Made by a program: the position numbers and the translations under genes
NCBI GenBank assembly: GCA_900088475.1
Contig: FLMG01004215.1
Span: 1-64,000, forward strand
DNA: 64,000 bases
Direction: 5' to 3'
Origin: Hyphochytrium catenoides
Taxonomy: Eukaryota; Protista; Hyphochytriomycota
Shown here: piece by piece, positions 5,871 through 62,424 of the stretch
How positions within the stretch are numbered: position 1 is the stretch's first letter
How the letters are laid out: every line of letters begins with the position of its first letter
Notes under the pieces: model-generated
Databases searched by the model: none
Seen by the model: the letters and a program-made list of their open reading frames with translations, nothing else
Told to the model about the DNA's origin: nothing

Positions 5871-6372
5871 CTTTCTGTCCCTCTCTCTCTTTCTCTCTCT
5901 CTCTCTTCTTTCTCTCGTTCTCTTTGTCTTCCTCTTTTTTTTATCTCTCTTTCTCTAGGTACTTCGTCTCTCTTATACTCTTTCTCTCTCTCTCTCTCTC
6001 TGTCTCCCTATCTTTCTCTCTCTGTCTCTCTATCTTGCCTCCCCTACATAATGTGCGGTGGGGAACTTTCGCTCGAAAGGAAAGCTTCGGTAGCCGCTAA
6101 CTCAATTTTGTGGATCTTCCCTCAGAAAAAGCCGCTAGCGGCTAGGCTGTTACGAAGCGTCATGTTACAGCTCCCTCTCTTCCTCTCTCTCTCTCTCTCT
6201 ATCTATCTATCTATNNNNNNNNNNNNNNNNNNNNNNNNNNNNNNNNNNNNNNNNNNNNNNNNNNNNNNNNNNNNNNNNNNNNNNNNNNNNNNNNNNNNNN
6301 NNNNNNNNNNNNNNNNNNNNNNNTCTCTCCCCTCACCCTACTCTCTCTCTCTCTCTCGCTTTTCTCCCTTCC
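5871..6372. repeat. (CT)n/(ATCT)n microsatellite-rich tract in the CCT8/WDR34 divergent interval
   Basis: Visible ctctct runs at 5871-6035, 6170-6214 and 6324-6372, flanking an assembly gap. Confidence 0.9.
6215..6323. other. Assembly gap (N run)
   Basis: Run of n characters. Confidence 0.99.
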
Positions 6373-15646: not shown

Positions 15647-18600
15647 CCATCTCCCTAGTAAAGCATTTGGCGATCCCCTACAGTCCAGCACCAAGGGTCA
15701 CTGGATACTTTCAAGGTCTTGTGNNNNNNNNNNNNNNNNNNNNNNNNNNNNNNNNNNNNNNNNNNNNNNNNNNNNNNNNNNNNNNNNNNNNNNNNNNNNN
15801 CCGGCATGCTGTTACTCTCCTCCAGTTCCACCCTTCTCCTCATCTTTCTCCACCAAATTTAATGATTGTGCTTGAAGAGTCACGCCTTTTCCCAACTGCT
15901 TCTAGAAAATAGGAGAATAGGGTGCGCTTTCTACCTTCTTCTCGGCTATGGTAGATCGCGTCTGCCGGAGGTTCTTGCTGACCGCAGCAAGGTAAGAGTC
16001 ATTGGCTTGCATGAGATTGTAGCTGGAGAGAATAGGAGAGAGGGCGGTCAGAGTTTGGGCTTTCGTTTAGGGCTATTGTCAGCCCGGTCCTAAATCCGCT
16101 ATCTGTGTCGAGGCCTGTTTACATCTTTCCTTCTATCGTTGCTTCTTACTGCTTCAACCGATAGCTATCGGCCGAAAGTTGTTACCTACCCAGTGTAAAA
16201 AAATGCCCGCTGCTGGTACATCCACGTGGTCAGGTGGTCTAGATATCTTCCGACGTCGAGCGTCAACATGTAATGAGAATTGGTAGCTTGTTAGAGAGCA
16301 AAGCTAACATGGCAAAAGAAGCGCCACAGAAGGAAGATGGAGACTTGCGTTAACAGGAGGGGGAGAGGGACTAGTCCACATATGATTGGACCAAACAGTA
16401 CTTCGAGGTGGTTAGCAATATGTGTCTTCTATGGACCCAAGACCGCCAGATCAGAGGAAAAAGAGTGACATATAGTATGGACTAAAGGATTGAGGGGCGA
16501 AGGGACGATATTCTACCGTGAGCCCGTTCTTACTCTAAATTCTTCTTGCTATCAATCTCCTGAAGCATAAGCACCGCATCCACTTTGACCACCTCCAGTG
16601 CCTACATCCCAAAGTAAAGGAATTTGGAGAGAAGGAGAGAGAGAATAAGAAAGAGAGAGAAGGAGACAGAGAGAGGGAGAGAGAGAGAGAATCACCAAGG
16701 GGGTAGAAATCGAACCCGGCAGTGAACTACAGGTGGCAATACTAGCTCATAGAGAGGTTAATGTGCTTATCGTCTTCCTGCACGTTCCCTCGATAGATTC
16801 CTTCACACACCTTATGCAGCGCCTGCAGCTCTTCTTCCGCTTCTTTGGCTCTCTGACACTCTGTCTCCTTGGGAAGCTGCAGGTAGGAGGACATAGAGGC
16901 GTCATAGCGCTCTCGAGCTCTTTCTAGCCGATGCTTGCATCCTTTTGCTTCCTTGATTTCTACGTCCAGCAGCCGGCGGAGATCGTTAAAGAAGCTTTGC
17001 TGCAGTTGAGTCAAACGCACCTGAGAAAGGGTAACAGAGGCACCAGTAGAAAGTGAACAGAAAGAGGTAGACAGGTGAGTCCCAAGTGAGATCGGCAGTA
17101 AAAGCCCACGGAGACGGAGGAAGAAAAAGGGGTTCTGAGGCGAGACAAGGGGGTCGGGCAAAGGGAAGTGCCGCTTACCCTGGTCATTTCACCTTAGGGT
17201 ATTTCCTTTACCTCCCTCTCTTTCCTCCACAAGACCCCATTCACCTACTGACAATGATGCTCTCTCCTACAATCCTTCATCTCTCTTCCTTCATCTCTGG
17301 TAATGGTAGGCTCCCTATCATGCTTGAAGACGAGGAAGTCGGAGGACGGAGCAGCAGAGATAACTAGAGCCCCAACGTGTCCGCCTCTTACCTCCTCCAA
17401 CGTAAGGTGACTACGAAAGCAGTGCACCAACTTCCTGACTCCGCATTCAAACCCAGTGAGTGCGCCATCACCATCAGAAGGCGGAGAGACTCTGACGAGA
17501 GTATCCGCCAGCTCTCGACCACAGGAAATGGACTGAAGAGAAGATCGAAGATACCTGGAAGTCACCTCGGCCAACTTCTTCATATTCTCCTAAGGGATCG
17601 TATATGGAAAAGGGACATAGCCACCGTAGGATTAGATAGGAGGCAAAGTTTGAGGCGGAGCAGAGCATCCCGGAAAAGATAGAGGCGAGAGCAATATCTT
17701 GAACCAAAAAAAAGAAAGGAGAGAGAGAGAGAGAGAGCAAGAGAGAAAGAAAGAGAGAGAGAGAGAGAGCGAGACGGAGACGCTGAAGAGGGGACTTGAC
17801 GGTCCCGAAAGCGGATCAAAACAGATCTAGACGGTGACGCTCAACGCTTATTCGACGGAAGGACTGGTAGAGGACAAATATACCTGTAGATGTTCTATGC
17901 GGACTTCCAACCTGGTCAGCTCCTTCTTAAGGGTAGGAGAGTCATCCTCAAGAAGAGAGAGAAGAAATCTATTCTCCTCACGTGCAATCTTCTTTAATGT
18001 CTCGCTGTGGAAACTGTCAGATGACAAGAGCCGGTCTGTATGACTCTCGCATCGTTCTCTGGAAAAGCCTTCTTCCAGAGACCCATGGATTGACACGTCA
18101 ACTTCTTTCTCTGTATCTCCTTCCTTATCTGATCGATCTGCTTCTATTGAAGCACGCCTTTGAACCTTTGCCATCGCAGGCTGATTCAAGAGAGAAGACG
18201 AGAGGAGGCTTTTGCGTCCTTCATAGTTATCTGATGTGTTATGTGCTGCGTTATTGATCTCCTTCATCATCCTCCACTTCACCTGAGTGGCGAAAAAGGG
18301 TTGAGAAGAATCTTAGGGAGAGGCAGGAGGCAGCTACAAGCGCACTATACATAGCGGGCAGAAAGGTTACGCCCCCAAAGGCCAATATAAAGCAAGTGGT
18401 AATCACTCAGAGGTCAACATTGGTAGGCAGAGAAAATAGAGATCAAGTGCCAGATAGAGGAGGAAAAGAAACGAGGATTGAGGAAAGTAGCACTTGGTAC
18501 AAAGCCACAAAGAGACTAAACCGAGCGAGACGGAGGCCAGAATCAGATCATAATGAGAGTGGCGATGAGATCATGGAACAAGAGTGAGGGGGTATATGGG

Positions 18601-20555: not shown

Positions 20556-22178
20556 ATGGCAGCTGTTCGCAACGTGAACTCAGGCGCCGAAATTGTTGGC
20601 AAGCGCCAGGCTCTTCTGGTCAATGTCGGCGCTGCAAAGGGCCTGCAGGGCGTACTTCGCTCCAACCTTGGGCCTCGGGGGACCCTCAAGATGCTTGTAG
20701 GTGGAGCTGGTCAGATCAAGCTGACGAAGGATGGTAGCGTCTTGCTCAGTGAGATGCAAATTCAGCATCCTACTGCCATGCTTATCGCCCGCACAGCCAC
20801 AGCACAGGACGATATTACCGGCGATGGCACGACATCGGTTGTTCTCTTCACTGGTGAGCTGCTAAAGCAGGCAGAGAGATTTCTCGGTGAGGGCCTTCAT
20901 CCACGGATACTGGCTGAGGGCTTCGATATCGCTCGGGACATTGTACTGGAATTCTTGGACGAGTTCCGTGTTACAAAGACAGAAATAACACAAGACAGGG
21001 AGCTGCTCCACTCTGTGGCAAGTACCTCTTTGAGGACAAAGCTATCACTAGAGCTTGCAGATCAATTCACAGACATTGTAACGGATGCTCTTCTGACCAT
21101 CGTCAGACCGCAGCAGCCTATTGACCTTTTTATGGTTGAGATCATGCACATGATCCATCAAACAGCCACGGACTCCAGACTGGTGAAAGGGTTAGTGCTA
21201 GACCATGGTGCAAGACATCCAGACATGCCTCCAGAGCTCCATAATTGCTACATTATGATTGCGAACGTTTCCCTAGAGTACGAGAAAAGTGAGATCCAGT
21301 CAACGTTTAACTACAGCAGCGCGCAGGAGAGAGAACGGATGGTCGAGGCAGAGAGGCGCTTTACGGATGAGAAGGTTCGACAAATTATTGAGCTGAAGCG
21401 TCAGGTCTGCATCCCAGAGAATGGCAAGAGTTTTGTGCTCATCAACCAGAAGGGTATTGATCCGCTCTCATTGGATATGCTGGCCAAGGAAGGTATCCTG
21501 GCACTGCGTAGAGCAAAGAGGCGCAACATGGAGCGCCTCGCGCTTAGCTGTGGCGGCGTAGCAGTGAATAGTACAGAAGATCTCACTCCTGACGTTCTGG
21601 GATACGCGGGCCATGTGTACGAGCAGATCTTGGGAGAAGAGCGATACACCTTTGTGGAGGACGTCGAGAACCCGTTCTCGTGCACAATTCTCGTGAAAGG
21701 ACCCAACGAGCACACGATCAATCAGATCAAGGATGCCGTCCGTGACGGACTGCGCGCTGTAAAGAATGCAGTTGAAGATAAAGCCGTTATTCCTGGCGGT
21801 GGGGCTTTCGAGGTTGCAGCGCACTCCCGGCTGATGAAGCGAAAGGATAGTGTAAAGGGCAGGGCAAAACTTGGTGTACAGGCGTTTGCAGACGCGCTTT
21901 TGGTTATTCCAAAGACATTGGCTGAGAACTCTGGGTTTGATGTGCAAGAATCGCTTATCAAACTGCAAGAGGAGCATGAGAATAGCGGCCAAGCGGTAGG
22001 ATTGGATCTTGTGACAGGTGATGTGATGCTCCCAGCTGAAGTGGGTATTTGGGATAACTATAGAGTCAAGCGACAGTTCCTTCATCTGAGCACTGTGCTG
22101 GCCAATCAGCTGCTCTTAGTGGATGAGGTGATGAGGGCAGGCAAGCCTATGGGAGGTGGTAAGATTGACAACGAATAA
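20556..22178 (+). CDS. CCT6: T-complex protein 1 subunit zeta (CCT6), intronless
   Basis: Single 540-aa ORF containing [55 protein letters not shown] and [13 protein letters not shown]. Confidence 0.98.
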
Positions 22179-46476: not shown

Positions 46477-49400
46477 TTAGAAATATCCCGAAAGATCTGC
46501 GTTCTGCTTGGCCAGCTCTACCAGCATGGGATCATCAAAGAATTTGCTGATGCTAACATCTTCACTAAGCCCCTTGCGACGTCTGGTCTTCACCATAAAC
46601 TCGCGGGCGAGATGCGGAGGTGGTGAGGGCTCTAGAGGGTGGAGAACGATGCTCCGATCCAGAGGGTCTCCTGGAACCACGGCCCAATGATCGAAGACTT
46701 GCTGGCAGAAACTTGAGCCCTGGGTGAAGCAGCGAAGGTCTGTCTCAAAGCCGAAGGACTCAATGACTGGAAGGTAACCGTTGACAGTGTAGAACGGTGA
46801 CCCTGGCTTTGGCGCATCCTACAATGCCAGTGAAAGAGAGAAGGTCAGCACAAACGACTACGTCATCCTCTGAGAACACCAGGGACCGTGAAGAGTCAGA
46901 TGATCAAGGTTCTTGGCGCTGTTACTACCAAAGCACAGTAGTAATACTGTAGCAGTACAGATCCCCAACCACCACGGTTAGGGAGATGTAGAAGTAGCTA
47001 GAGAGCAGATTTCATTAGCTGTACCTGCGTAATATGTCCTCTTCTCCTTGCAAGGACATTGAACAGTGACGACACGGTATCAGCCGGTGTCTGAATTTCA
47101 ACAAAGTAGACTGGCTCCATAATGCGGGGAGTGGCAGTCAAAAAGGCGGAATATGCGACCCTTCTGGCGGTAGGGATGATCTGGCCCCCACCTCTGTGAA
47201 TTGGCTCACCGGCAATGGCTACGTGATAAAAGAGCAAGAAGGACGAGGAAGAGCCCTTAGATAGAAGACAGATAATAAGCCATCCAACCCGAGAAAAGGG
47301 AATAGGATGATACAATTCGAGATTTTCTTCAGGTGGACTAGCAGGCAGGAGAGGGCAAGAGGTCATAATAATGGAACAGCACGAAAGATCTCTGTAAGAC
47401 AGAAACCAAAGGCAGGCCCGCAAGGTACTCCCGATAGACAGTGACACTTCGACGGCCCTCTTCCTACCTGCATCAAGGATCTTAAACTTAGCGTTCCTGA
47501 TCGGCTCATCGCAGAGAGGACCTTCTCTGCATCCCCATTGGAAACCTTGTACGATGCTGTCCTTCACTGCACCGAGTAGACCCTTATCCACCTCGGACGG
47601 TAAGGTGTCATCCAACAAAACGTTGGGGCCCTGCTTATCAGGTCCGAAGGCCCAAATAGACCGAGCCGCCAGTAGGTCCCAATCATACTTCGATTGAAAG
47701 AATTCTCCAACGGCTTTCCTCCCAGCTTCAATATGAACCTCCCCTTTCTCTATATCTTCAGCAATCCCCGGTTCCAAAGGCTCAGCGATCATTGTGAGCT
47801 TATTCCGTTTGTTCGGAGTCTCGGACACGCATCTACACGGAGTGACAGCAAAATGTGCGTGACGGTGGGTGAGATAGAGAATCTAAGATGTAATTCGATA
47901 TGCCCCCCGCTAAAAAGTAGACCAAGGTAAACGAAAGACTATTTCTTAGCGATGATGCAGGCAAGAAGACAATCCGTGCGCCGTCGTCCAAATCCATCCA
48001 CTTACTTGAGGGAGCTTGTCTCTACTACGGTCTCGCAGAAAGCCACAACAGGATCGGCAACCTTGATTTCGATGCCACTGAACATCACTCTGAGATCATG
48101 CATGATGCAGTCCATGTAGAGTTCTCCTGTGCCTAGTATGACATGCTCCCCACTCTCTTCTACCTTAGTTGTTACCAAAGGATAGGTCTTGTTGATTTTG
48201 CGAAGCCCTAGGGAGCGCAACAAGGCACGCGTTAAGGTGAGTCCTACCAGATGGCAACTGAGGCACGAGATATGCACGTCAATGCTCCCGCATTAACCAA
48301 AGGACTTACCTTCAAGCATTTTGGGGAGCTCAGAGGGATTGAGAGGCTCTACCGCTAACTTAACCGTGGAGATGGTGTTGAACCTTAAGGGCTTGAATAT
48401 CGCTACGTCTTCGGTTCCCCTAACGTTGGTGACGGTAGCCGTTTTGTTGATGGAAGCATCTATGCCGTCTATAAGCACCCAGTTTCCTGCAGGCACTCTG
48501 TTGACGTCAACGCGATACCGGCCTTGAGGAATAGAGACTGCAGTAACTGCTCTAACGCTCATATCTTCATCGTCGTCGATAGAGTATGACTCTCCCAGAA
48601 CTTTCACCTCCTAGAAAAGAGAATGGTCATGGTTACGTCTAATTAGTTGACAGGCAACCGGTAATCGGTGAGAGCGGCGTCCTTTACCTGTCCAACAGCT
48701 ATTGATCCACTATAAATGCGTCCAAACGCCGAAAACGTCTGGGCGTCGACTGACGAGTACAACTTTACAATATGGATCATTAGAGGGCCATCAGGGGAGC
48801 AGCTTCGCATCTCCTCGAAGATCTCTGTATCTCTGTCTCCAGAGTAGATGTTGTCCACCTTACGCACGGCGTTCGACGGGGGACTGGGCACATGTTTGAT
48901 AACCATGTCCACAAAACCCGTAGCTTGGCCAAAGAACTGTCGGGCAACAAACCAACGTCAGGATATTGGACTATGGGCGTAGCTTTAAAAATGTAAGGAA
49001 AGGGTACGAAAGGTTCTATGGGGGAAAAAACGAAGCACCCCGGATGGAACGATAGGAGGAGCAAAGGTGACTGTAGCTTCAATAAGCCCAACGCTTACCT
49101 GCTCCAAAACGAGCTTTAAAAGTGGCTTTGGGTTTAGATGAAGCTGTTCTCGCCTTAGTTTGATTCCTAACTCCCTCAAAGTCCTTTGGAGGGACTCTGA
49201 CTCCTCACCTAACACCTGAAATGATGCCCCAATACTCCTGTGAGCTTCGCCTAGCTCATCTGACCCACAAAATGGGGTCCATATGAATGCTGACCTGCGC
49301 GTACAGCTTGTACAGCGGCTCCAGGATGAACTGGACAAAACTTCTCTGGCCTCCGGGGGGCTACGGATGCAGATGGAGTCAAACCTGGGACTGTCGGATC

Positions 49401-51253
49401 CACTAGGTCTTTCTATGGCCAGTCCTGCCTTACCGCCTGCTTTCTGAATGTCCTGCTGTCTGGGTGGTAATAGTAGTCACCCCATAACCGCTTTGAAAAT
49501 GATTCAGCGTTAATGTTACCATAGTAATCTGCATAAACCTGCACACGATATGTAAGCTTCGTGAAGTGAAGAACCAACCTTTGGCTGTTGTTTTGGCCGA
49601 CCAACCTTGGCAAATGATCCTAGAGAAAAGCACCAACCGTGCTGGCCTGATGCGAAGCAGACATTGCCCAGCTCGGGGCTAACTCTTTGTCGAGGTCCGC
49701 TGTGACCAATTGCGGACGCCAAAAGGCCATTTACCTCCTCAATCGTGTGCATCAACTTGTGATAAGCGTCCGCGGGAGGTAGTTTAAGCTCGAGTATAAG
49801 CCTGTCCACCTAGTCAACCACGACTTTAGCAACTTGCTAGAGCTTTTTATCTTTATGGCTGTTAGCACACAAGCGAGCGCTTGCAAATTACCTTGTTGAT
49901 GACTAGGACTACTGGCACAGGCTCTTGAACGGCATGCCGGATGAGGCGCTCGGTCTACAAATATTGGGATGCGAGGTAACGGAATGGAAAAGAATGAGGC
50001 GAAGACCAATAAGGCCCCGTTAAAGAGTTATGATAAGGGCCAGCTTTTTTGAATAGAAGAGTCATCAAGAGCTTAAAAGTTAATTGTACGTACGTTGAGC
50101 ATCACACCCTCAACAGCATCAACAACCAGGACCGCGCCGTCAGCGACTCGAAGTGCGGCTGTGCACTCATCAGAGAAATTCACGTGGCCCGGAGTGTCGA
50201 CAAGGTTGATTAGAAAGGACTTCCCCTTTGAAGACTCTAGTACAAGCGACACAGGTGTGGACTTTATGCTGATCTTTCTCTCCTGCTCGTCGTGACGAGT
50301 GTCTGTGTACCGGATCTGCCGAAATGAAAAGAAAATAGAGGACTTAGATTGTCTGGTCAGGGAGGGCATACTCTATCTTGGCTACCTCTTTGGCTGGATT
50401 CCACTTCTTCTGTTGTGTCTGTTGGATAAGGAGGTCCATGAATAAAGTTTTACCTACGGAGGCGCTAGGTTATATACAGCCATTTTAGGGTCCTAGAGCT
50501 CAGGGTAAGGAACAACCTACCATGATGCAGATGGCCAAGAATGGCTACGTTTCGTATAAGATGAGGGTTGCCCATGAGCGACGTCATAAACTCCGTCGAG
50601 TACTGTGTGAAGGCAAGGAGATATAAGGTGTGCGCAAATAGCCGGAAGGCAGGCGTCGAGGGTGGTTAAAAAAGGCGTCAACGTCTTAAGGGGGCAACTT
50701 TTAAAAGGGTTGACTGAGGATGGAGTCTATACTGCTACTTACTGTTGTCGTGGGTGTTTCCTTTTCTAGAACGCTGAAGGCAACTGACTTCACGGGCTCA
50801 ATGATGGGCTTCTCAATAGGCTGCGCATCCTCATCCATAACCAATGTCTCCACTTCTGGACCGTAAACCTCTTCTGCATCTGGGTAGTACTTCTTATCCT
50901 CGTGCAACACGATAGCGGATTCTTCCGCACCCTCTCGGTCATCTGAACAGGAATCACTTACTATGCGACCATTGATTTGCTGATAGAGAAATCCGTCACC
51001 TACCTCCGTGAACTATCAGTCTTTGATCGCTCGCACTGTCTTCCATATCCATCCGATCGAAATCCTAGTTCGAAAAGGTCCACTCTTACAGGCCCATTCT
51101 TGTAAGAACACAGCCTTTCTTTCTCACCTGTTCTCTCCTGTCGCCCTCCTCGCTCATCTCTTCCTCCTCACTCTGGTCCTCATCTTCCTCCTCGCTGCTC
51201 GCCAGCTCCGGCCCAATGTAATTCCCAAACTCGTCATAAAGTGAATCATCCAT
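46477..51253 (-). CDS. EFTUD2: U5 snRNP 116 kDa GTPase Snu114/EFTUD2, multi-exon
   Basis: [87 protein letters not shown] and [20 protein letters not shown]. Confidence 0.97.
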
Positions 51254-52216
51254 GATTGCTAAATGAGATTAGCAGAGGCGATAGGCACTGTGTCAAATGA
51301 GCTTTGGCACACTGGCACGAGCACCAAGCAGGTCTCGCACTACCAATCTGGATATGGAGATTCAGACAGAGAAATCTGGATTCTCGCCTTTCTTCCTTGA
51401 GACTTCCTCTGCTGCTGCTGCTCTTGTGAACCTTGCGCTCTCCCCCACAAATCCAGTCCCACTGCACACCTACCCCAGGAGATAAAGGTCGCAAGTCGCA
51501 AGTTCCAAGTTTCAGGTTGAGATACTTGCGCTAACTATACTTATACTTGACCCATCCAAGATTTCCAAGGTTGGTATGTCGCTGAATCTCTATTTGAAAA
51601 GCTGTAGAAAGTCAGAAACAAGTTACAATCTCTGAAAGGCCTTCATCCTCAAGCATCTGCATGAGTCGCCTTCTTCAATAATATCACATGCTTTCTAACA
51701 TCACTACTAGTAGTGTCCTCTTGCAATTTGGCGGCATTATTACCTCCCTTTCCTATCCTCTTAGAATCCAAATTATTGGGGTCAATTCTCAGCTAGGCTT
51801 ATCCTCTGAAGCCCTCGTGGGAGCTACCATCCATCCTCCAAAGTACTTTCCTGTCTAAGATTATTATCTTGTGTGTCCCTTGCCGTCCACTAGTGGTAGT
51901 GTTGTCATCAGGTTATGATGAGCCGTCACCCTACTACGAGTAGCTCTTATGGTCTCATGATTGTGTGCAATTCTCTCACTCAGCACAGGTGAATCCTGAA
52001 AGAGTGATCCAGATACAATAGCCTACGACGTGATCAACCAGAATCTACTGGCGTATACTAAGCCTCACAGGATTGATAACAAGGCAGCACTATTGGGTTT
52101 CTCAATATATTATTGGAGAAAGACATATACATCCCTAAGAGTCGTCACGGCACTACTTAGACATTAATAAGTGGTCTAGCTTTTCGAATACGTTTGAGCC
52201 CTAGATAGATAGGCGC

Positions 52217-53701
52217 TTAGTACTTAGCGGGTGCCTTGTAAGGGTCCTGGTGGTAGTAGTCATCCTCCTCGTACTTGTTGTACTCCTCAGAGTAGAGGTA
52301 GTCATACTTCTCCTTCTTGTAAGGCTTGCCGTAGTATCTAAGTGGAAGAACTGCGGGAGACCAGTTAGGAGTGCAAGCCTTGTCGGCGTATCCCCAGACA
52401 GTACGGTTGCCAACAGGGCGAACAAGTCTGTTGTTGTAAACTTCGTATCTGTGAGGGAACGCATCTGCGTAGGTGGCATCGCTGGAAGGATAGCTGGTGG
52501 AAGCCACAAGAGCATGAACGAACTGCTGGAACTCAGCAACCTTAACGTCAACCTTAAGAGTGTTGCCTGACACGAAAACGTAGGCGGGTCCCCAAGGCTG
52601 GTAGGTCTCAGAGCCAATGTAGCCGTAGTATCCGCTGGAGACATCAAAGAGGCCACGGATGTTAAACTTGAAGTCGATGACAGCGGTCTGTGCGGATGGG
52701 TGAGGGATAGGAGTGTAGGCAGCGTCGTAGCCCTTGCCGGTCTTGGTAACATCGATGAGGTTGGCAGCAACAAAGTTAGCAATTTTGCGGAGGGTGTCAG
52801 ATGCCAAAGCATCCTTGTCAGACTGTAGCATAGTCTTGAAGGTCTCCTCGTACTTGTTGGTATAGTAGTAGTCATCCTCATCACCAGGGTAGTACTCATC
52901 CTCCTCACCATAGTATTCGTCGTATTTGGGGTCATACTTGTCGTCGTACTTATTGTCGTAGACCTCAGCAATGAGAGACTCAAGATAGCCCTTGGCGTTC
53001 TTGCTATACTGAGGCTTCTTGTACTTCTTGGGCTCAGCAGGCTTCACATAACGTACGTTGTACAGCTGATGGAAGACAGCGACGGAGTTGTCAGTACAGG
53101 TGTGCTTGAACTCGATCTCAAGAGGGAAGTTGTTGCCCATATACTGGTGCTCAGAGATAGAGTGGAAAGTGAACTCCTTAAGGGTGCACTTGAGAGTCTC
53201 CTTCTTGGGCTTGTACTGAGGAGGCTTATATCCCTTCTTGGGCTTGTAAGCGGGCTTGTAAGCAGGCTTGGTAGGAGCGTAGTCTTCAGGGAGAGCAACC
53301 ATATCGTCGGATTGCTCGAAAGAGGCATAGTAGCCGTACTCGTTAGGCTCAGGCCTGTAAGAGCTTACGTACTCCTTAGGAGGCTTGACATTGGTAGGCT
53401 TCTCAAAGACCACGGTAGGGGCCTTCCAGTAGTCATTGTCTGCGCCAAGAGTAACCTTGATAGCCTTCTGGTCCAAGATGCTCACGGTGGCGGTTCCCTT
53501 AGGTACCCATTTGGTATGGGTGGTCTTCCAGGAAGCAGGGGTGCCTCCCTCAGGAAGCGGCCACACGATGTTGATAGGAGAGGTACCTGCCCAGGCGCCT
53601 TGAGTTACATAGTTCTCGTTGCTGATATCTTCTGGTACGAGAGCAGCATTGCTGGTAGCAGTGACAGCAGCGATAGCTGCAGCGATTGCGTAGATCTTCA
53701 T
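52217..53701 (-). CDS. Secreted Tyr-rich alpha-carbonic anhydrase-fold protein, probably non-catalytic (CARP-like); intronless CDS
   Basis: Signal peptide MKIYAIAAAIAAVTATSNA. Alpha-CA motifs occur in the correct order: TSPINI (QSPINI), EFTFHSISEH (QFHFH..SEH), FPLEIEFKH (YPLEMHLVH), YYGYIGSETYQP (YYRYxGSLTTPP) and NNRLVRPVGNRTV (NxRPxQPLNGR). Confidence 0.8.
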   Translation of the reverse strand: MKIYAIAAAIAAVTATSNAALVPEDISNENYVTQGAWAGTSPINIVWPLPEGGTPASWKTTHTKWVPKGTATVSILDQKAIKVTLGADNDYWKAPTVVFEKPTNVKPPKEYVSSYRPEPNEYGYYASFEQSDDMVALPEDYAPTKPAYKPAYKPKKGYKPPQYKPKKETLKCTLKEFTFHSISEHQYMGNNFPLEIEFKHTCTDNSVAVFHQLYNVRYVKPAEPKKYKKPQYSKNAKGYLESLIAEVYDNKYDDKYDPKYDEYYGEEDEYYPGDEDDYYYTNKYEETFKTMLQSDKDALASDTLRKIANFVAANLIDVTKTGKGYDAAYTPIPHPSAQTAVIDFKFNIRGLFDVSSGYYGYIGSETYQPWGPAYVFVSGNTLKVDVKVAEFQQFVHALVASTSYPSSDATYADAFPHRYEVYNNRLVRPVGNRTVWGYADKACTPNWSPAVLPLRYYGKPYKKEKYDYLYSEEYNKYEEDDYYHQDPYKAPAKY

Positions 53702-55622
53702 CTTGGTCTAGGCAAGTGAGGCTGTTCTCGGCGGAGGATGCTCACTAGAGGCGGGGAATTTGAGTGTGAGGATCCTGTTGGCAGGAGGCACCAGGGCATC
53801 GACGAAAAGCCACGATCTCGCCACACCATAGTTAGTAGAGAGATCCCATAGCTTTTGTTCTACTTTGCCTCACACACAGGTTGTATCGGCATGCATCGTT
53901 CTCTCTTTGCCTTCCTGTCCCTTGGAGATACAGTGGTCAAGACGTCAGGCTTGTCAAAAGGCAGAAGAGGAATGGGCAGAAAGAGTCAAGAGGGAAGGTT
54001 GTTACACTCTCCCTCCCTTTGATCAGCCAAACAAGGGACCAAAGAAAGAAAAGGATAGAGGCGCAATCATGTGAGAGAGAGAGAGAGAGACAGACGGGAA
54101 GGCAATAGGAGAGGGAAGTCTAGGACGAAGGAGGAAGAGAGAAACACGAAGAGACATCCGTCAACCTTCACACGAAAGCAACTTTCTCGTTCTCACCCTA
54201 AACCACCCCCGGCCCCTCCCCCGACCCTGAACTGCTTAGAAGCGAGCCCTCCCCCTCCTTCGCGTCTAACCGTCATGGGCGACCTTAGGAGCTCTGTTGC
54301 CCCCTCTTGGAGATTGAGCCGCTGGCCTTCTCTCTTCTTATCTACCATGTTGGCACAAAAGCCCACCCATCCCACACTAATATGATATCGAAGGAGGTCC
54401 CACCCAGCGTGCGAAAGGTCAAAAGGTCTGCCCAGTAATACTCTAACACATACAATATCCTCCCACACACTCTTCACTTGGCCCAGCTAACCCTAGCGAC
54501 AAACGCACGCCTCGATCGAAGCATCGTAATGCGGAATAGGCCACTGACTATGTACCAGTCAGGCCGGAAAGATCGCCAAACACAGACCAGAACGCTGAAG
54601 AGCCACTACATGTAAGTTCGCCCTTCGAACTCTTCCTGTGATTGGTGACCCTTGACATCGTATTTATTCAGAATGATAGCCACGTATATTAGTTCTGGAG
54701 TTCAAATAGCCCCAACATATTCAAGATAGTGGTCATCTCCACCCTGCTGATTGCTCGATTTCGATGTGGAAGCAGTTTGTCCTGCTGGTCAAGGGTCCAA
54801 GCACGGCCTGCTGCCATCATCATGGGAACTCAGAGACCTTCTCTCTTGCCCTCTCTTCTCTTCTCTTTCTTCCCAGTCCTCATCTCTCTCTTCCATCCCG
54901 CTGTGCTTCTGCCCTGGTCGCACAGGGTAATTAGCGTGGCAGGCATGGCAGGCATGGCATCCCAATGATTGCACGAGACCTGGTAACGTCAGCAGTCTTA
55001 GGAGGTCCAGCTAGAGAGAGAAAACGTGGGGAAGGCTCTTTGGGTTGTCCCTTATTATCCTCTTTCATTGCCATGCTCACCCTACTCTGCTTGCCAACCG
55101 ACAATTGCATGAAAGAAGAAGGAAGAGAAAGGGTTCGCTCTGACGGTCAGCTGTACCTGAGCGTCATCCTTTCTTTTCTCTGTGGCGTTTGGAAGTAGGG
55201 TTGGATGGGGAGGAACTTTACTGAGAAGAACGGAGGCACAGAAGAAGAGACGGCCGCAAAGGAAACGAAAGAATGGCAAACAGCAAAAACAGAGGTATAG
55301 AGGTGCGGGAAGGAGGGAGAACAAAGAGGGATCGATCGATTGCAATCAAAACCTTTGCCTTTCTCGAGAACCAAGGAGGGGTGGTCCATGGAAACAACGG
55401 TCAGCACCCTGAACACACCGACTGGCAAAAGAATCTTACAGAGAGGAGAGAGGGAAGAGCAATAACACTCCTTCCTCTGACTTGAAAGCTCGGGATTTCT
55501 ACCACGAAGTCCGCGGCTGTTTGTGGCTCCAGCTAACGCGCGGTACTGCTGTGCGTTCTGATCATGGAGAGAAAGCTCTTTCTACGAGTACGTTGTAGGT
55601 ATTATAGATAGGAGGACAGCAC

Positions 55623-57955: not shown

Positions 57956-60175
57956 ATGGAGAACTCTCAAAACGAAGACGAGCTTTCCGGTAAATCGCCC
58001 ATCGCGGTCCGGTCTGCACCTTCTCCAAACTTCTCGCGGATTCCTAGATTAGTCAAGAGGCCAACACCGATATCAACCTCAAGCCTCAGGTCTTAGAATT
58101 AAATCCCTGCCTTTCTTCCATGGCATCTGCTAACGCTCCTTACTTTCCTGCTCCTTAGTGCGGATAGAAATGCGGGAGCTGGTTATTCTAGCCAGACAGG
58201 TAAGGTGCTCGAGCCTTCCAGTCCTCCCCATCAAGATGATGCAGTCCACGGCGAGACGGGCTCCGTTTTGGCTGAATTTATTTATCGCTTTCGCAATGCC
58301 GCTCCACGAAGCCCTTCTGAGAGGCAGAAGGAGCTGGATACCTCCAGAAAAAAGTTCTGGTGGCTAAGCGAGGACGAGGCGAAAGCCCAGAAACGGAACA
58401 GGAGTTCCAGTCGTACAGGAGAGAAAAAAGGGACGCCCGAGCAAGCAGAAAGACTCCCACCTGGAGGACTTAACTCGAGCCCACAGACTGATAGAAATTC
58501 GTCTCATCAAGGCTTGGAAGCGGAAAGAGTTGGACAAGATGAGTCCCTACTTCAATCCACGACCCAGCTGACGGCTGGAGTTGTGAAGGATGTATCCTCC
58601 ACTAATCATGGACTGAAAGAAGGAGACGTTCAATTGTCATTGCCTGATGCACCTGGATTAGGAGACTCTACTCTGAAGGGAGAGAAAGATGTCGGAGAAG
58701 TAGCCTCCACTCTATTCATCAACTCTCTCCCTCCTACTCCTACACGTGCACACATTCCGGACCTTGCCTCTCCGTTCTCACCTCTACTAGTCTCTAGCCA
58801 CCTCGCTCTAAATATGGCTCCACCCGGAAGCGTTACGGAGGAAGAAAGGTTTCAACTAACTCTGGAAGAAAGGACGCTAGAGCTATCTTCGTCTCGCTCT
58901 CTACCTTCAGGGAGAGCTGCGGCTTACGTTGCTCCTGAAGAGCTCATTTTGGAAGATCCAGAAGTGACTATCTCGCGGCTTCGAGAGAGACTGAAGTCCA
59001 TCGATTCCCTGTATACCCGAAGTGCCAAAGATATGTCCCAGACTCCTTCAGAGCTTTCATCAAGCCAAGCGGACTTTCTTCGCTTATCCTCTCCACGTTC
59101 ACAGTCCGTTCTCAGGTCTTCGGATACCTCGCTTCACTCATCGACAGCGATCGGGAACAGACGAGCCAGGGGACAGGGAAGCCTGATGGCTGTTAGGCAA
59201 GTCGATGAATTTGAAGATGATAATCGGGACAGTATGATGGGTTGGTGGCAAAAGAGAGGGGTCTTCTCGGTCCCATCTGTCTCAGGATCTGACTTAGGTC
59301 TGCTCCTGGCAGAGGATACGGAGGAAGGAAAAGGCAATGACAATACTGCTTCTGTGAAGTCTTCCTTTGAAAAAGACACAAGCGGCCGTAGCAAGTCCTT
59401 CGCAATGACGGTTGCCGTCGGATCAGGACCGCCTTCCTCAGAATCGCCCACTCGATTACCAGGATCTACAAAGGCTGGGGAAAGAGAGTTCTCAGAAACC
59501 GATCAAGCGGCAGAATCCGTGATGGAGCATGCTGACACCGGTCCAGAAGTCATTTCTCTTCCGACAAACGTTTCGAAGATTGATGATGTGGAACGGTTGA
59601 CCATGGAAGTAGCAGATGAAGTCGCAAAGAAGGATAACTCTGAGACAGTGGCAGAAATAACTCCCGTTACGACCAAGAGTAGAGACAGCACTCAGCCTTT
59701 AAACGAAGAACTTTTGGATTTCAAAACACCAAGCGAGCAAGATAGACTAGAGTCGGCATCTACCACTATTCTTCCTCCATCCGAGGTCAGTCTCCCGTCC
59801 GATGAGGGCACGATGGGTGTGACCTTAAGTACGACCACAAATGAGTATAGAGAGAGTGAAAAGAGTGTCATATGCGACGACTTTGAGCTTAGCGTCTCTT
59901 CCCTCTCTACCTCCACTGACGAGAGCGTGCTGCTAGAGTATAGTGAGGATGAAGACAGTGAACTTCAACCATCACTTGTTAACGTTGACGGGGATGTGCG
60001 AGCCGTGTCTCCGTCTGAGTCCAACAGCCACAGTATCCATCTACCACCTGTGTCTTCCATAGGCGAGGCTCCAGTGGTCCCAAGAGAGCATGACTCAGAC
60101 CCTATCGTTGTATCACTTCAACAAGCCATAGAGCGGTACCGTCTAGCACTAGACATATTAATGAGCAAAGAATAA
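57956..60175 (+). CDS. PROSER3-like (proline/serine-rich, disordered) protein
   Basis: SVLAEFIYRFRNAAPRSPSERQ..FWWL resembles the recalled PROSER3 motif [22 protein letters not shown]..FWWL, and there is a C-terminal DPIVVSLQQ helix. The long exon runs from an acceptor at 58158 (branch gctaac) to 60175. The start is ATG 57956 or 57931. Confidence 0.6.
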
Positions 60176-60366: not shown

Positions 60367-62424
60367 TTAGAACTTGAAAACATTGCTAGAATCAAAGCCT
60401 AACTCAGCAAGGATTCCTGTAAAAGGCACCATCGTCAGAATCAGGGGTTCACGCTGTCAACCACAACCACGGCCTCGAATCTTACTCTTCTCTCAACCAT
60501 TGAACATACTCTCTACTTTAGCTCCAAGCACTTGTGAACTGCCCCTAAGTCAAACTTTCACTGACCTGTAACGGGTCCTTGCTTTTGCCTATCCTTGGGC
60601 CCACAGGTTACCTCTACGAAACCAGGCGGCCCACACACGCAAACAAGTGACTTCTCCTTGTCAAGGGTAGCTAGAATAGGCTGCAGGATATTTTCCAAGA
60701 GCTCCCGAGAAATGTGTCCCTTGTGTCCAGGCCAAGCTTCATCTCCCCGACTTAGAACATGAACATGGGAGAAGTGGGGGTAGTTCGTTTCTAAGGCTAA
60801 AAGCCGCAGTTACCAGAGCACATAGGAGATGGAGCCACCAGCAGAGATGTGAGGGAGATATCCAGTTGAGGCGAGTGGTCGATGACTAAGCGTACCAGTG
60901 AGCAGATCTCTGACGATAATATCATCTTCTGTCTTGTTGAAGTCGACCAATATTACTTCTGTAGAGGAAGAGGACCGAAGAAGAGTGAGAAACAAAAATC
61001 ACACTAGTGTCTGGGCCATCTAGCAGAGATCTGATTAGGGATACCTGTGAAGTCATCATTATACACAATGTGCTGGATGAGCTGTGGTACAGGAGGTAGG
61101 TATGTGCGGCCCACAGTGAGAAGAGAGCAAGGCAGAGGTTAGAAGACGTATTTAAGCTAACGTCCTCCGGTTTTGATAACTTCGGTCCTGACTGCCATAC
61201 GTTACCCTTGGTCCGACAATGTCTCAGCTTTTGTCTGACGTTGAGCCCTAAACCTTAGCCAGCGTATCCTAAGTTTACATTTGATGCACCCATCGCTTGT
61301 TGGAAGCCAAACGCTTAAACCATGCCCTCGGAGCTCTCTGGACCCCAATGCTTTGCTCTGCACCCTACATCTAGCTGGCGTTCTTTGTATCCTTTCACCT
61401 TCATTTACCTGTAGCATTGGCGTCACGCCAGTGCCGCCTGCGAGCATGATAATTTTATTGTACTTCCCGGTCTCATAGGGAAACTTCATAAACGGGCCCT
61501 TTACACCGACTGGAGCTCCGAGCTCCGCCTTCACCAAGAAATGGCTCAGTGCGCCGTCGTTATAGCCTTTCACGATAAGATCTATGCCATCGACATCTCC
61601 AGGCCGATTCACTGGGGTGTAAGGGCGAACGACAGCTTTCGACCCTTCTTTCTCGCCTATAACAGAAGAAGAGTGAACATCGTCAGCAAGAGGAAGTGAT
61701 TGAGTCAAGTATTCATATACCAACTCGTCCATCGTTCACGAGAGGTCAGAAGCCGCTAAAGACGTAAAGAATACGTGATAACACGCTGGGGCAGCCACGT
61801 CAGCTTCAAATAAAATGCATGAAGAAGTATTATAACCTTTGAGCTGCTCAGGAAAGGCTCTGATGGTGATGCATGAAGCAGCGTTGAACATGAACTTCTC
61901 CTCCGGGTTCTCAGGAACTAGTCGTAGCCGCGCAGTGTCATGGGTGATAAAGTCCTTCGATGCTATCCTGAACGGCCTGAGATTACGGTGTTACGAAGTA
62001 ACAGGTCAGAGATAGGGTCCCAAACAACGTTATTCACTATGGTCTTGGGACATAAGATACTTACTTCCAGTCCTTTGAGGCATCAGCAGGTTTCTGAGCG
62101 GACTTGGTAGGTACGGCAGCAACAGGTGCCGGGATGCTTGATAGAATGCCACCCGAGTTGCCAGGCTATATTAGCAAATGCTGTCAGGATCTATTACGCT
62201 TCGAGCCTAGCGCATACATCTGCACCATGCCGCCCATGCTCACCTCCATCAAGACCGGGCTATTCCTTTCCAGAAGCTCTCCTACCACGATGCCAGTGGC
62301 AGCTCCACCGACAGTCATCAGAGTGCCTGATAAGGATAACGTACACTTAAGTCGATGTGGTAATCTACTATAGCCTTTCAAAGAGCTTACCGCGCACATT
62401 GCGGCGGATGAACGCCCCGATCAT
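60367..62424 (-). CDS. NADH-cytochrome b5 reductase, mitochondrial MCR1-like, multi-exon
   Basis: ITHDT, VVRPYTPV, LIVKGYNDGALS, KGPFMKFPY, MLAGGTGVTPMLQ, FNKTEDDI, CVCGPPGF and GILAELGFDSSNVFKF*; the N-terminus looks like a targeting/membrane segment. Confidence 0.9.

Follow-up and report, generated by a model that had tools for sequence, protein, structure and literature searches.

A tyrosine-rich carbonic anhydrase pseudoenzyme from Hyphochytrium catenoides as a candidate extracellular matrix or adhesive protein

The 64,000-nucleotide stretch of Hyphochytrium catenoides DNA analysed here (assembly GCA_900088475.1, contig FLMG01004215.1, positions 1 to 64,000 of the forward strand; hereafter the window) carries, on its minus strand at 52217..53701, an uninterrupted, intronless gene that encodes 494 amino acids and a stop codon. 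On sequence evidence the product is a homologue of the alpha-carbonic anhydrases (CAs), and it is modelled with their complete fold. It is almost certainly non-catalytic, it looks secreted, and its fold is interrupted and extended by three low-complexity segments rich in tyrosine. We propose that it serves as an extracellular cement, wall or adhesive component and not as an enzyme, a reading to which we give a probability of about one half.

The composition of the protein is unusual for a CA. Among its 494 residues are 55 Tyr (11.1%), exactly the figure that a first-pass annotation of this DNA had estimated, as well as 49 Lys, 40 Pro, 64 Asp plus Glu and only 3 Cys. The reading frame is complete, as seen from the list of open reading frames (ORFs) of the window, from RNA contigs that cross it without joints, and from two relatives that are collinear with it from Met1 to a C-terminal Lys-Tyr. 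All coordinates given below for parts of this gene are on the minus strand.

The motifs of alpha-CAs are present and collinear, beginning with SPINI (QSPIDI in true CAs), FTFHSISEH (FHFHxxSEH) and PLEIEFKH (PxExHxVH) and continuing in order with YYGYIGSETYQPW (YYxYxGSLTTPPC) and YNNRLVRPVGNR (NNRPVQPLNGR). The complete ordered set had been recognised in the first-pass annotation, and it is borne out by profile comparisons. Searched singly against the PDB with phmmer, the protein matched solved alpha-CAs at E 8e-5, with LKEFTFHSISEHQYMGNNFPLEIEFKH aligned to LKQFHFHAPSEHTIKGKSYPFEAHFVH. A profile of the query and its two relatives reached E 8e-7 over 3 collinear blocks (SPIDI, FHFH..E.H and GS.T), and hhalign against 120 true alpha-CAs gave a probability of 97.7% (E 1.4e-12) over residues 172-436, the terminal NNRPVQPLNGR included. 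Because the inserts and the divergence of the protein break up the alignment, a Pfam scan returned no PF00194 (Carb_anhydrase) match even at E up to 10; its only match, to Mating_N, is a chance one.

Structure prediction agrees with the sequence statistics when it is given homologues to work from. From the lone sequence it returned no fold, with a predicted local distance difference test score (pLDDT) of 32, whereas an alignment of the family and the 120 CAs yielded a model with a predicted template modelling score (pTM) of 0.67 and a core above pLDDT 90. Searched with this model, Foldseek placed only alpha-CAs among its top matches (E ~1e-11), and VIA-align gave Z 22.7 against 4x5s, with 204 of 223 residues at 2.4 Å across model residues 23-438. 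A match in the ESM Atlas (212 residues at 2.6 Å) and AlphaFold DB clusters concur, and all structures matched by the model have the alpha-CA fold that the first-pass annotation had expected. By sequence and by structure alike, the closest matches are bacterial-type and algal alpha-CAs, not the CA-related proteins (CARPs) of animals; CARP VIII stands 31st in Foldseek.

Within the gene, the N-terminal part of the fold (residues 20-94; 53420..53644) contains SPINI, which the family profile aligned as sPidi on QSPVDI, and structural alignments begin inside it at model residues 23-29. The central beta-strand block (residues 169-216; 53054..53197), which holds the former zinc site, is the part best aligned to solved CAs and is modelled at pLDDT >90. 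The C-terminal part (residues 321-445; 52367..52741), with GSETYQPW at 52592-52615 and YNNRLVRPVGNR beyond it, is covered by hhalign columns to residue 436 and by structural alignments that end at residues 437-444.

The residues that make a CA an enzyme have been replaced in this core. In CA II numbering, used throughout, Thr178 occupies the place of His94, His180 that of His96 and Glu197 that of His119, and the GSLTTPPC loop reads GSETYQPW; alignments to CAs and the family table uphold these assignments of the first-pass annotation. His180, Glu184 (Glu106), Glu195 (Glu117) and Thr366 (Thr199) are retained, also as first described, and so are His107 and His122. In the CO2 pocket, Lys199 is found at Val121 and Glu365 at Leu198. 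The most telling observation is how the site varies among the three family members (query/two relatives): the zinc positions read T/R/V at 94, H/L/H at 96 and E/E/Q at 119, and further positions read E/Q/E at 106, K/L/F at 121 and E/T/E at 198. The fold-stabilising residues His107, Glu117, His122 and Thr199, on the other hand, do not vary among the three. Since the relatives read R/L/E and V/H/Q at the zinc positions and no common ligand set exists, this appears to be a family of pseudoenzymes and not a new metal chemistry. As judged from the variable zinc-ligand positions and the charged CO2 pocket, the protein is almost certainly non-catalytic, in line with the earlier proposal of a pseudoenzyme; the query core is predicted to bind zinc no longer, and no metal site is conserved in the family.

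Two further features of the core deserve mention. The His64 proton shuttle, listed as absent in the first-pass annotation, is the least secure of the site readings, the alignment being uncertain in that region; residues 1-179 contain a single His, His62, which is positioned ahead of the strand in question and is itself variable, with H62Y in two runs. Cysteines typical of secreted CAs are absent, and a new invariant pair, Cys172 and Cys202, sits on neighbouring central strands, where it may form a cross-strand bridge.

Three segments of low complexity, at about residues 95-168, 217-284 and 446-494, have no counterpart in true CAs by hhalign or in the 120-CA alignment. These are the blocks noticed at first pass, now located and predicted to be disordered (pLDDT <50 at 105-149, 226-280 and 449-494). 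Insert 1 (residues 95-168; 53198..53419) runs from a mixed acidic, Tyr-containing stretch into a basic Tyr-Lys-Pro block, KPAYKPAYKPKKGYKPPQYKPKK, with a pI of ~9.9. Insert 2 (residues 217-284; 52850..53053), gapped in true CAs, consists of a basic block (217-238, pI 10.2), a short helix and an acidic block (248-284, pI 4.1) in which 12 Tyr and 14 Asp/Glu are packed into 37 residues. The C-terminal tail (residues 446-494; 52220..52366) has 12 Tyr. Short in-frame tandem units of DNA build the blocks: a 12-nt unit encoding AYKP in insert 1, and a 12-nt unit encoding DKYD and a 24-nt unit encoding PGDEDEYY in insert 2. Composition and tandem-unit analysis thus find Tyr and Lys enriched in the repeats of a protein that bears a signal peptide.

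Directly after insert 2 lies an ordered helical hairpin (residues 285-320; 52742..52849), which is particular to this family. Its helices are modelled at 278-290 and 293-315 with pLDDT about 90, and A300, L304, K306, N309, A312 and V318 are invariant in all three members; hhalign against the 120 true CAs found no counterpart of it. The last two residues of the protein, Lys-Tyr (52220-52225), likewise end all three members, though the tails otherwise diverge, and may be a processing or sorting signal.

Relatives of the protein are few. An exhaustive HMMER search of 1.84 billion cluster representatives, standing for ~15 billion proteins, recovered only two other family members, P0001 (490 amino acids, 38% identity, E 1e-35) and P0002 (707 amino acids, E 2e-12), and its other four matches were ordinary CAs at E 3e-8 or weaker. 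Each relative comes from one contig of a public run, 1.7-2.3 kb long and transcript-like, and one of these contigs begins with a remnant of sequencing adapter. Both resemble the query in having a signal peptide, inserts at corresponding positions, a Tyr content near 10% and Lys-Tyr as the last two residues. Tyr makes up 9.6-11.1% of the three proteins, whereas among the 120 true CAs it averages 2.9% and does not exceed 5.6%. As a level near 10% is kept by transcripts whose G+C contents are 52% and 30%, the richness in Tyr is conserved in the family and does not depend on base composition.

Neither the protein by itself nor the profile of all three members gave a further relative in word-indexed protein searches, probably because low-complexity words swamped their candidate lists. 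Two scans of JGI metagenome contigs yielded no relative, and tblastn found no paralogue within the window. Among weak matches to the query are two giant metagenomic proteins, P0003 (1841 amino acids) and P0005 (1283 amino acids), which contain six and four tandem complete alpha-CA domains, respectively, behind a signal peptide and end in a membrane anchor.

The protein looks secreted. Its first 19 residues (53645..53701), MKIYAIAAAIAAVTATSNA, followed by ALVPED, have the layout of a signal peptide, with a charged start, a hydrophobic core and a small-residue cleavage site, and residues 2-14 are modelled as a helix. Both relatives begin with similar hydrophobic N-termini, which adds to the case for the signal peptide noted at first pass. 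By sequence reading, the C-terminus is hydrophilic and has neither an anchor nor a retention signal.

The gene is transcribed; a lack of expression was among the findings that the first-pass annotation would have taken as a refutation. Near-identical sequence occurs in 20 public RNA runs, 16 of which are soil or plant metatranscriptomes from many studies. RNA contigs from four runs, placed on 51000-55500, cover 52147-53621 only, at 90-100% identity and without joints, and leave the flanks empty. The transcript is therefore unspliced, with a 3' untranslated region of at least 70 bases (52147..52216, as far as the RNA contigs extend). As a control we took a stretch of equal length from an intronless chaperonin gene of the same window, and this was found in 1 RNA run only. 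The control gene, at 20556-22178 on the plus strand, encodes a 540-amino-acid CCT/TCP-1 subunit (Pfam Cpn60_TCP1, E 4e-169). Codon use in the CA-like gene is strongly biased (TAC 43/TAT 12, AAG 46/AAA 3, GAG 28/GAA 4). Together, the run counts and the codon bias point to very high expression in situ and lend indirect support to the earlier supposition that the protein is abundant.

The runs also record variation among strains. Each differs from the query by 3-24 codon changes, 33-64% of them non-synonymous, and none of the changes breaks the frame, introduces a stop or removes a Tyr. The sequence of the protein thus evolves fast, and its composition and frame are kept. A pseudogene or an annotation artefact is rejected in view of the expression, the frame kept in strain variants and the collinear homologues. 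Two ORFs that overlap the gene, 52201-52983 on the minus strand and 53069-53719 on the plus strand, translate into meaningless Ser/Thr/Leu-rich sequence; they result from its repetitive composition and were rejected as genes.

What might such a protein do? We propose a model where the dead CA domain would act as a stable folded hub and possibly as a binding module too. Molecules would be drawn together by their Tyr/Lys/Pro and Tyr/Asp/Glu blocks, which are opposite in charge, through charge pairing and through cation-pi and pi-pi contacts. Tyr and Lys would then be available for oxidative cross-linking, as DOPA-quinone to Lys or as dityrosine, by an extracellular tyrosinase or peroxidase, and the outcome would be a cement, wall or adhesive layer outside the cell. 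This matrix or adhesive role is inferred from composition and expression; it would fit the basic Tyr/Lys blocks, the acidic Tyr/Asp/Glu blocks and the apparent abundance.

Materials of this kind have been described in animals. Mussel foot proteins are Tyr- and Lys-rich, quinone-tanned structural proteins, and we take KPAYKPAYKPKKGYKPPQYK to resemble their decapeptide of the AKPSYPPTYK type. The trematode eggshell precursors P14, P19 and P48 offer a precedent, being secreted and very highly expressed, with short repeats that contain Lys and Asp besides abundant Tyr; tyrosinase oxidises their Tyr to DOPA-quinones, which bind Lys (PMC2758302). Neither the eggshell nor the mussel proteins have sequence homology to the query or a folded CA core, so they are a working analogy and do not make it a member of either group. 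It is tempting, and distinctly more tentative, to go a step further and see here an undescribed class of protist material, in which a dead CA hub would organise a self-assembling, oxidatively cross-linked Tyr/Lys cement. Such a material would be like those of mussels and fluke eggshells, though of independent origin, and its transcript would rank with the most abundant ones in a widespread soil protist.

Several points weigh against the matrix reading as a whole. Secretion was judged by reading the N-terminus and not by a predictor, and run counts reflect expression only crudely. The alignment from which the model was built is dominated by true CAs and so biases it towards the CA fold, though the sequence statistics are independent of the model. 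About half of the codon changes among strains are non-synonymous, so constraint on the sequence, as opposed to the composition, is modest. Finally, no gene for a cross-linking enzyme or for wall synthesis adjoins the CA-like gene, whose neighbours are a gene for a spliceosomal GTPase and a Ser-rich ORF, and the window as a whole holds no cross-linking enzyme.

Of the alternatives, the one that survives best, while still rather unlikely, is a secreted pseudo-CA that binds a ligand. Its core would recognise a polysaccharide or protein on prey, on a host or on the protist's own surface, and the Tyr-rich segments would serve as spacers or avidity tails. Non-catalytic CA folds are used for binding elsewhere. 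CARP VIII, X and XI and the CA-like domains of PTPRG and PTPRZ have an alpha-CA fold and have lost at least one zinc His; structural matches to our model include CARP VIII (2w2j) and, at Z about 21, the PTPRG/PTPRZ domains with contactins. Poxvirus D8 (OPG105), also matched (E 2e-4 to 2e-5), is a non-catalytic CA-like fold that functions outside the membrane in attachment. The conserved, ordered hairpin of the family would also suit a binding role. However, the former active-site positions vary among the three members, which argues against a conserved pocket; the standout conserved trait is the Tyr content with its charged blocks, and no ligand can be proposed.

Nor do these binding proteins appear to be close kin of the query. 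The CARPs and the PTPRG/PTPRZ domains are metazoan, lack low-complexity inserts and are not its closest relatives; D8 is viral, membrane-anchored and without Tyr-rich segments, and its similarity is far weaker than that of cellular CAs. The query is an acatalytic CA-related protein in the broad sense, with an alpha-CA fold and zinc His residues lost, and it falls outside the metazoan CARP VIII/X/XI clade. Because its closest matches are bacterial-type and algal alpha-CAs and not CARPs, the loss of the zinc site looks independent.

A matrix for biomineralisation, comparable to the nacrein-like proteins of molluscs with which the first-pass annotation had drawn a parallel, is very improbable. 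Here the acidic Asp/Glu/Tyr block within the CA domain would serve as a calcium binder and regulate the deposition of carbonate or another mineral. The architecture is indeed similar: nacrein-like proteins are secreted alpha-CAs interrupted by a low-complexity, repetitive insert, in which some oyster forms have a run of Asp/Glu in place of Gly-X-Asn (PMC4066178), and the query is split at 95-168 and 217-284 and has its 37-residue block with 14 Asp/Glu inside the CA domain. Nacrein-like proteins, however, keep the three zinc His and CA activity (PMC4066178), both of which are lost or predicted to be lost in the query family; they are metazoan and their inserts are not rich in Tyr or Lys. The query differs further in its three low-complexity segments and its additional helical hairpin, half of its low-complexity sequence is strongly basic, and nothing indicates that the organism mineralises. 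The split CA domain of the earlier comparison therefore stands, as an analogy only; nothing points to a shared origin other than membership of the alpha-CA superfamily.

An enzyme still active with zinc or some other metal, held by His180 and Glu197 or by alternative ligands, is more improbable again. His180, Glu184, Glu195 and Thr366 are kept and Glu197 could in principle ligate a metal, but position 96 is Leu in one relative, position 119 is Gln in the other, and position 94 is Arg or Val, so that no ligand set is shared. Lys199 and Glu365 stand in the otherwise hydrophobic CO2 pocket, and the protein falls below every Pfam Carb_anhydrase threshold. The His/Glu site with altered metal chemistry that the first-pass annotation had offered as an alternative is not sustained by these data.

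Equally improbable is a secreted or vacuolar storage protein on the CA fold, acting as a reserve of tyrosine or nitrogen or as a pool of pigment precursor: dioscorin of yam tubers (PDB 4twl), an abundant alpha-CA-fold protein in non-CA use, is among the best structural matches (Z 21.9, 215 residues; E 0.04 by single sequence and 0.005 by family profile against its PDB sequence) and the query gene is highly expressed, but dioscorin is a plant protein without low-complexity inserts, storage proteins do not typically have blockwise charged, disordered, repeat-built segments, no vacuolar signal is present, the transcript occurs in many bulk soil samples and not in one reserve stage, and there is no positive evidence for such a role.

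Downstream of the CA-like gene on the same strand (46480-51253) is the gene for the Snu114/EFTUD2-type spliceosomal GTPase, which has many short introns of ~80-140 bases with GTACGT or GTAATT starts and a CTAAC-like branch site, whereas the CA-like gene itself has none. Upstream, 4.5 kb of low-complexity DNA precedes the Ser-rich ORF (58205-60175, plus strand), which encodes 656 apparently disordered amino acids with no Pfam match. The region upstream of the CA-like gene at 53702-54110 is pyrimidine-rich on the coding strand and includes a (CT)n/(GA)11 repeat at 54073-54094, at which RNA reads are seemingly cut. Further along, at 61202-61732 on the minus strand, lies an exon resembling NADH-cytochrome b5 reductase (closest solved match 2eix, ~46% identity), without the insertion found in the mammalian enzymes. 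No Rfam families and no tRNAs were found in the window, and its runs of N, which mark assembly gaps (6215-6323 and 15724-15800), are far from the CA-like gene.

In searches of the literature we met no account of an acatalytic, Tyr-rich CA from a protist. Mollusc shells contain split CAs with repeat inserts that have kept their activity, and to our knowledge acatalytic CA-fold proteins come almost only from animals and poxviruses, as binding modules. Here, an independent protist lineage joins the loss of the zinc site to the gain of low-complexity segments, with apparently very high expression in soils. Should the protein prove to be a cross-linked glue or wall component, it would offer a way into the question of how an abundant soil protist attaches itself, forms cysts or makes its covering. 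To the natural adhesives it would add a new design, a folded hub with oppositely charged, Tyr-rich arms, and as a cement encoded by a top transcript it could mark the activity of this protist in soil. Even if it is only a binding pseudoenzyme, the family would still be a clear-cut case of the CA fold being reused convergently.

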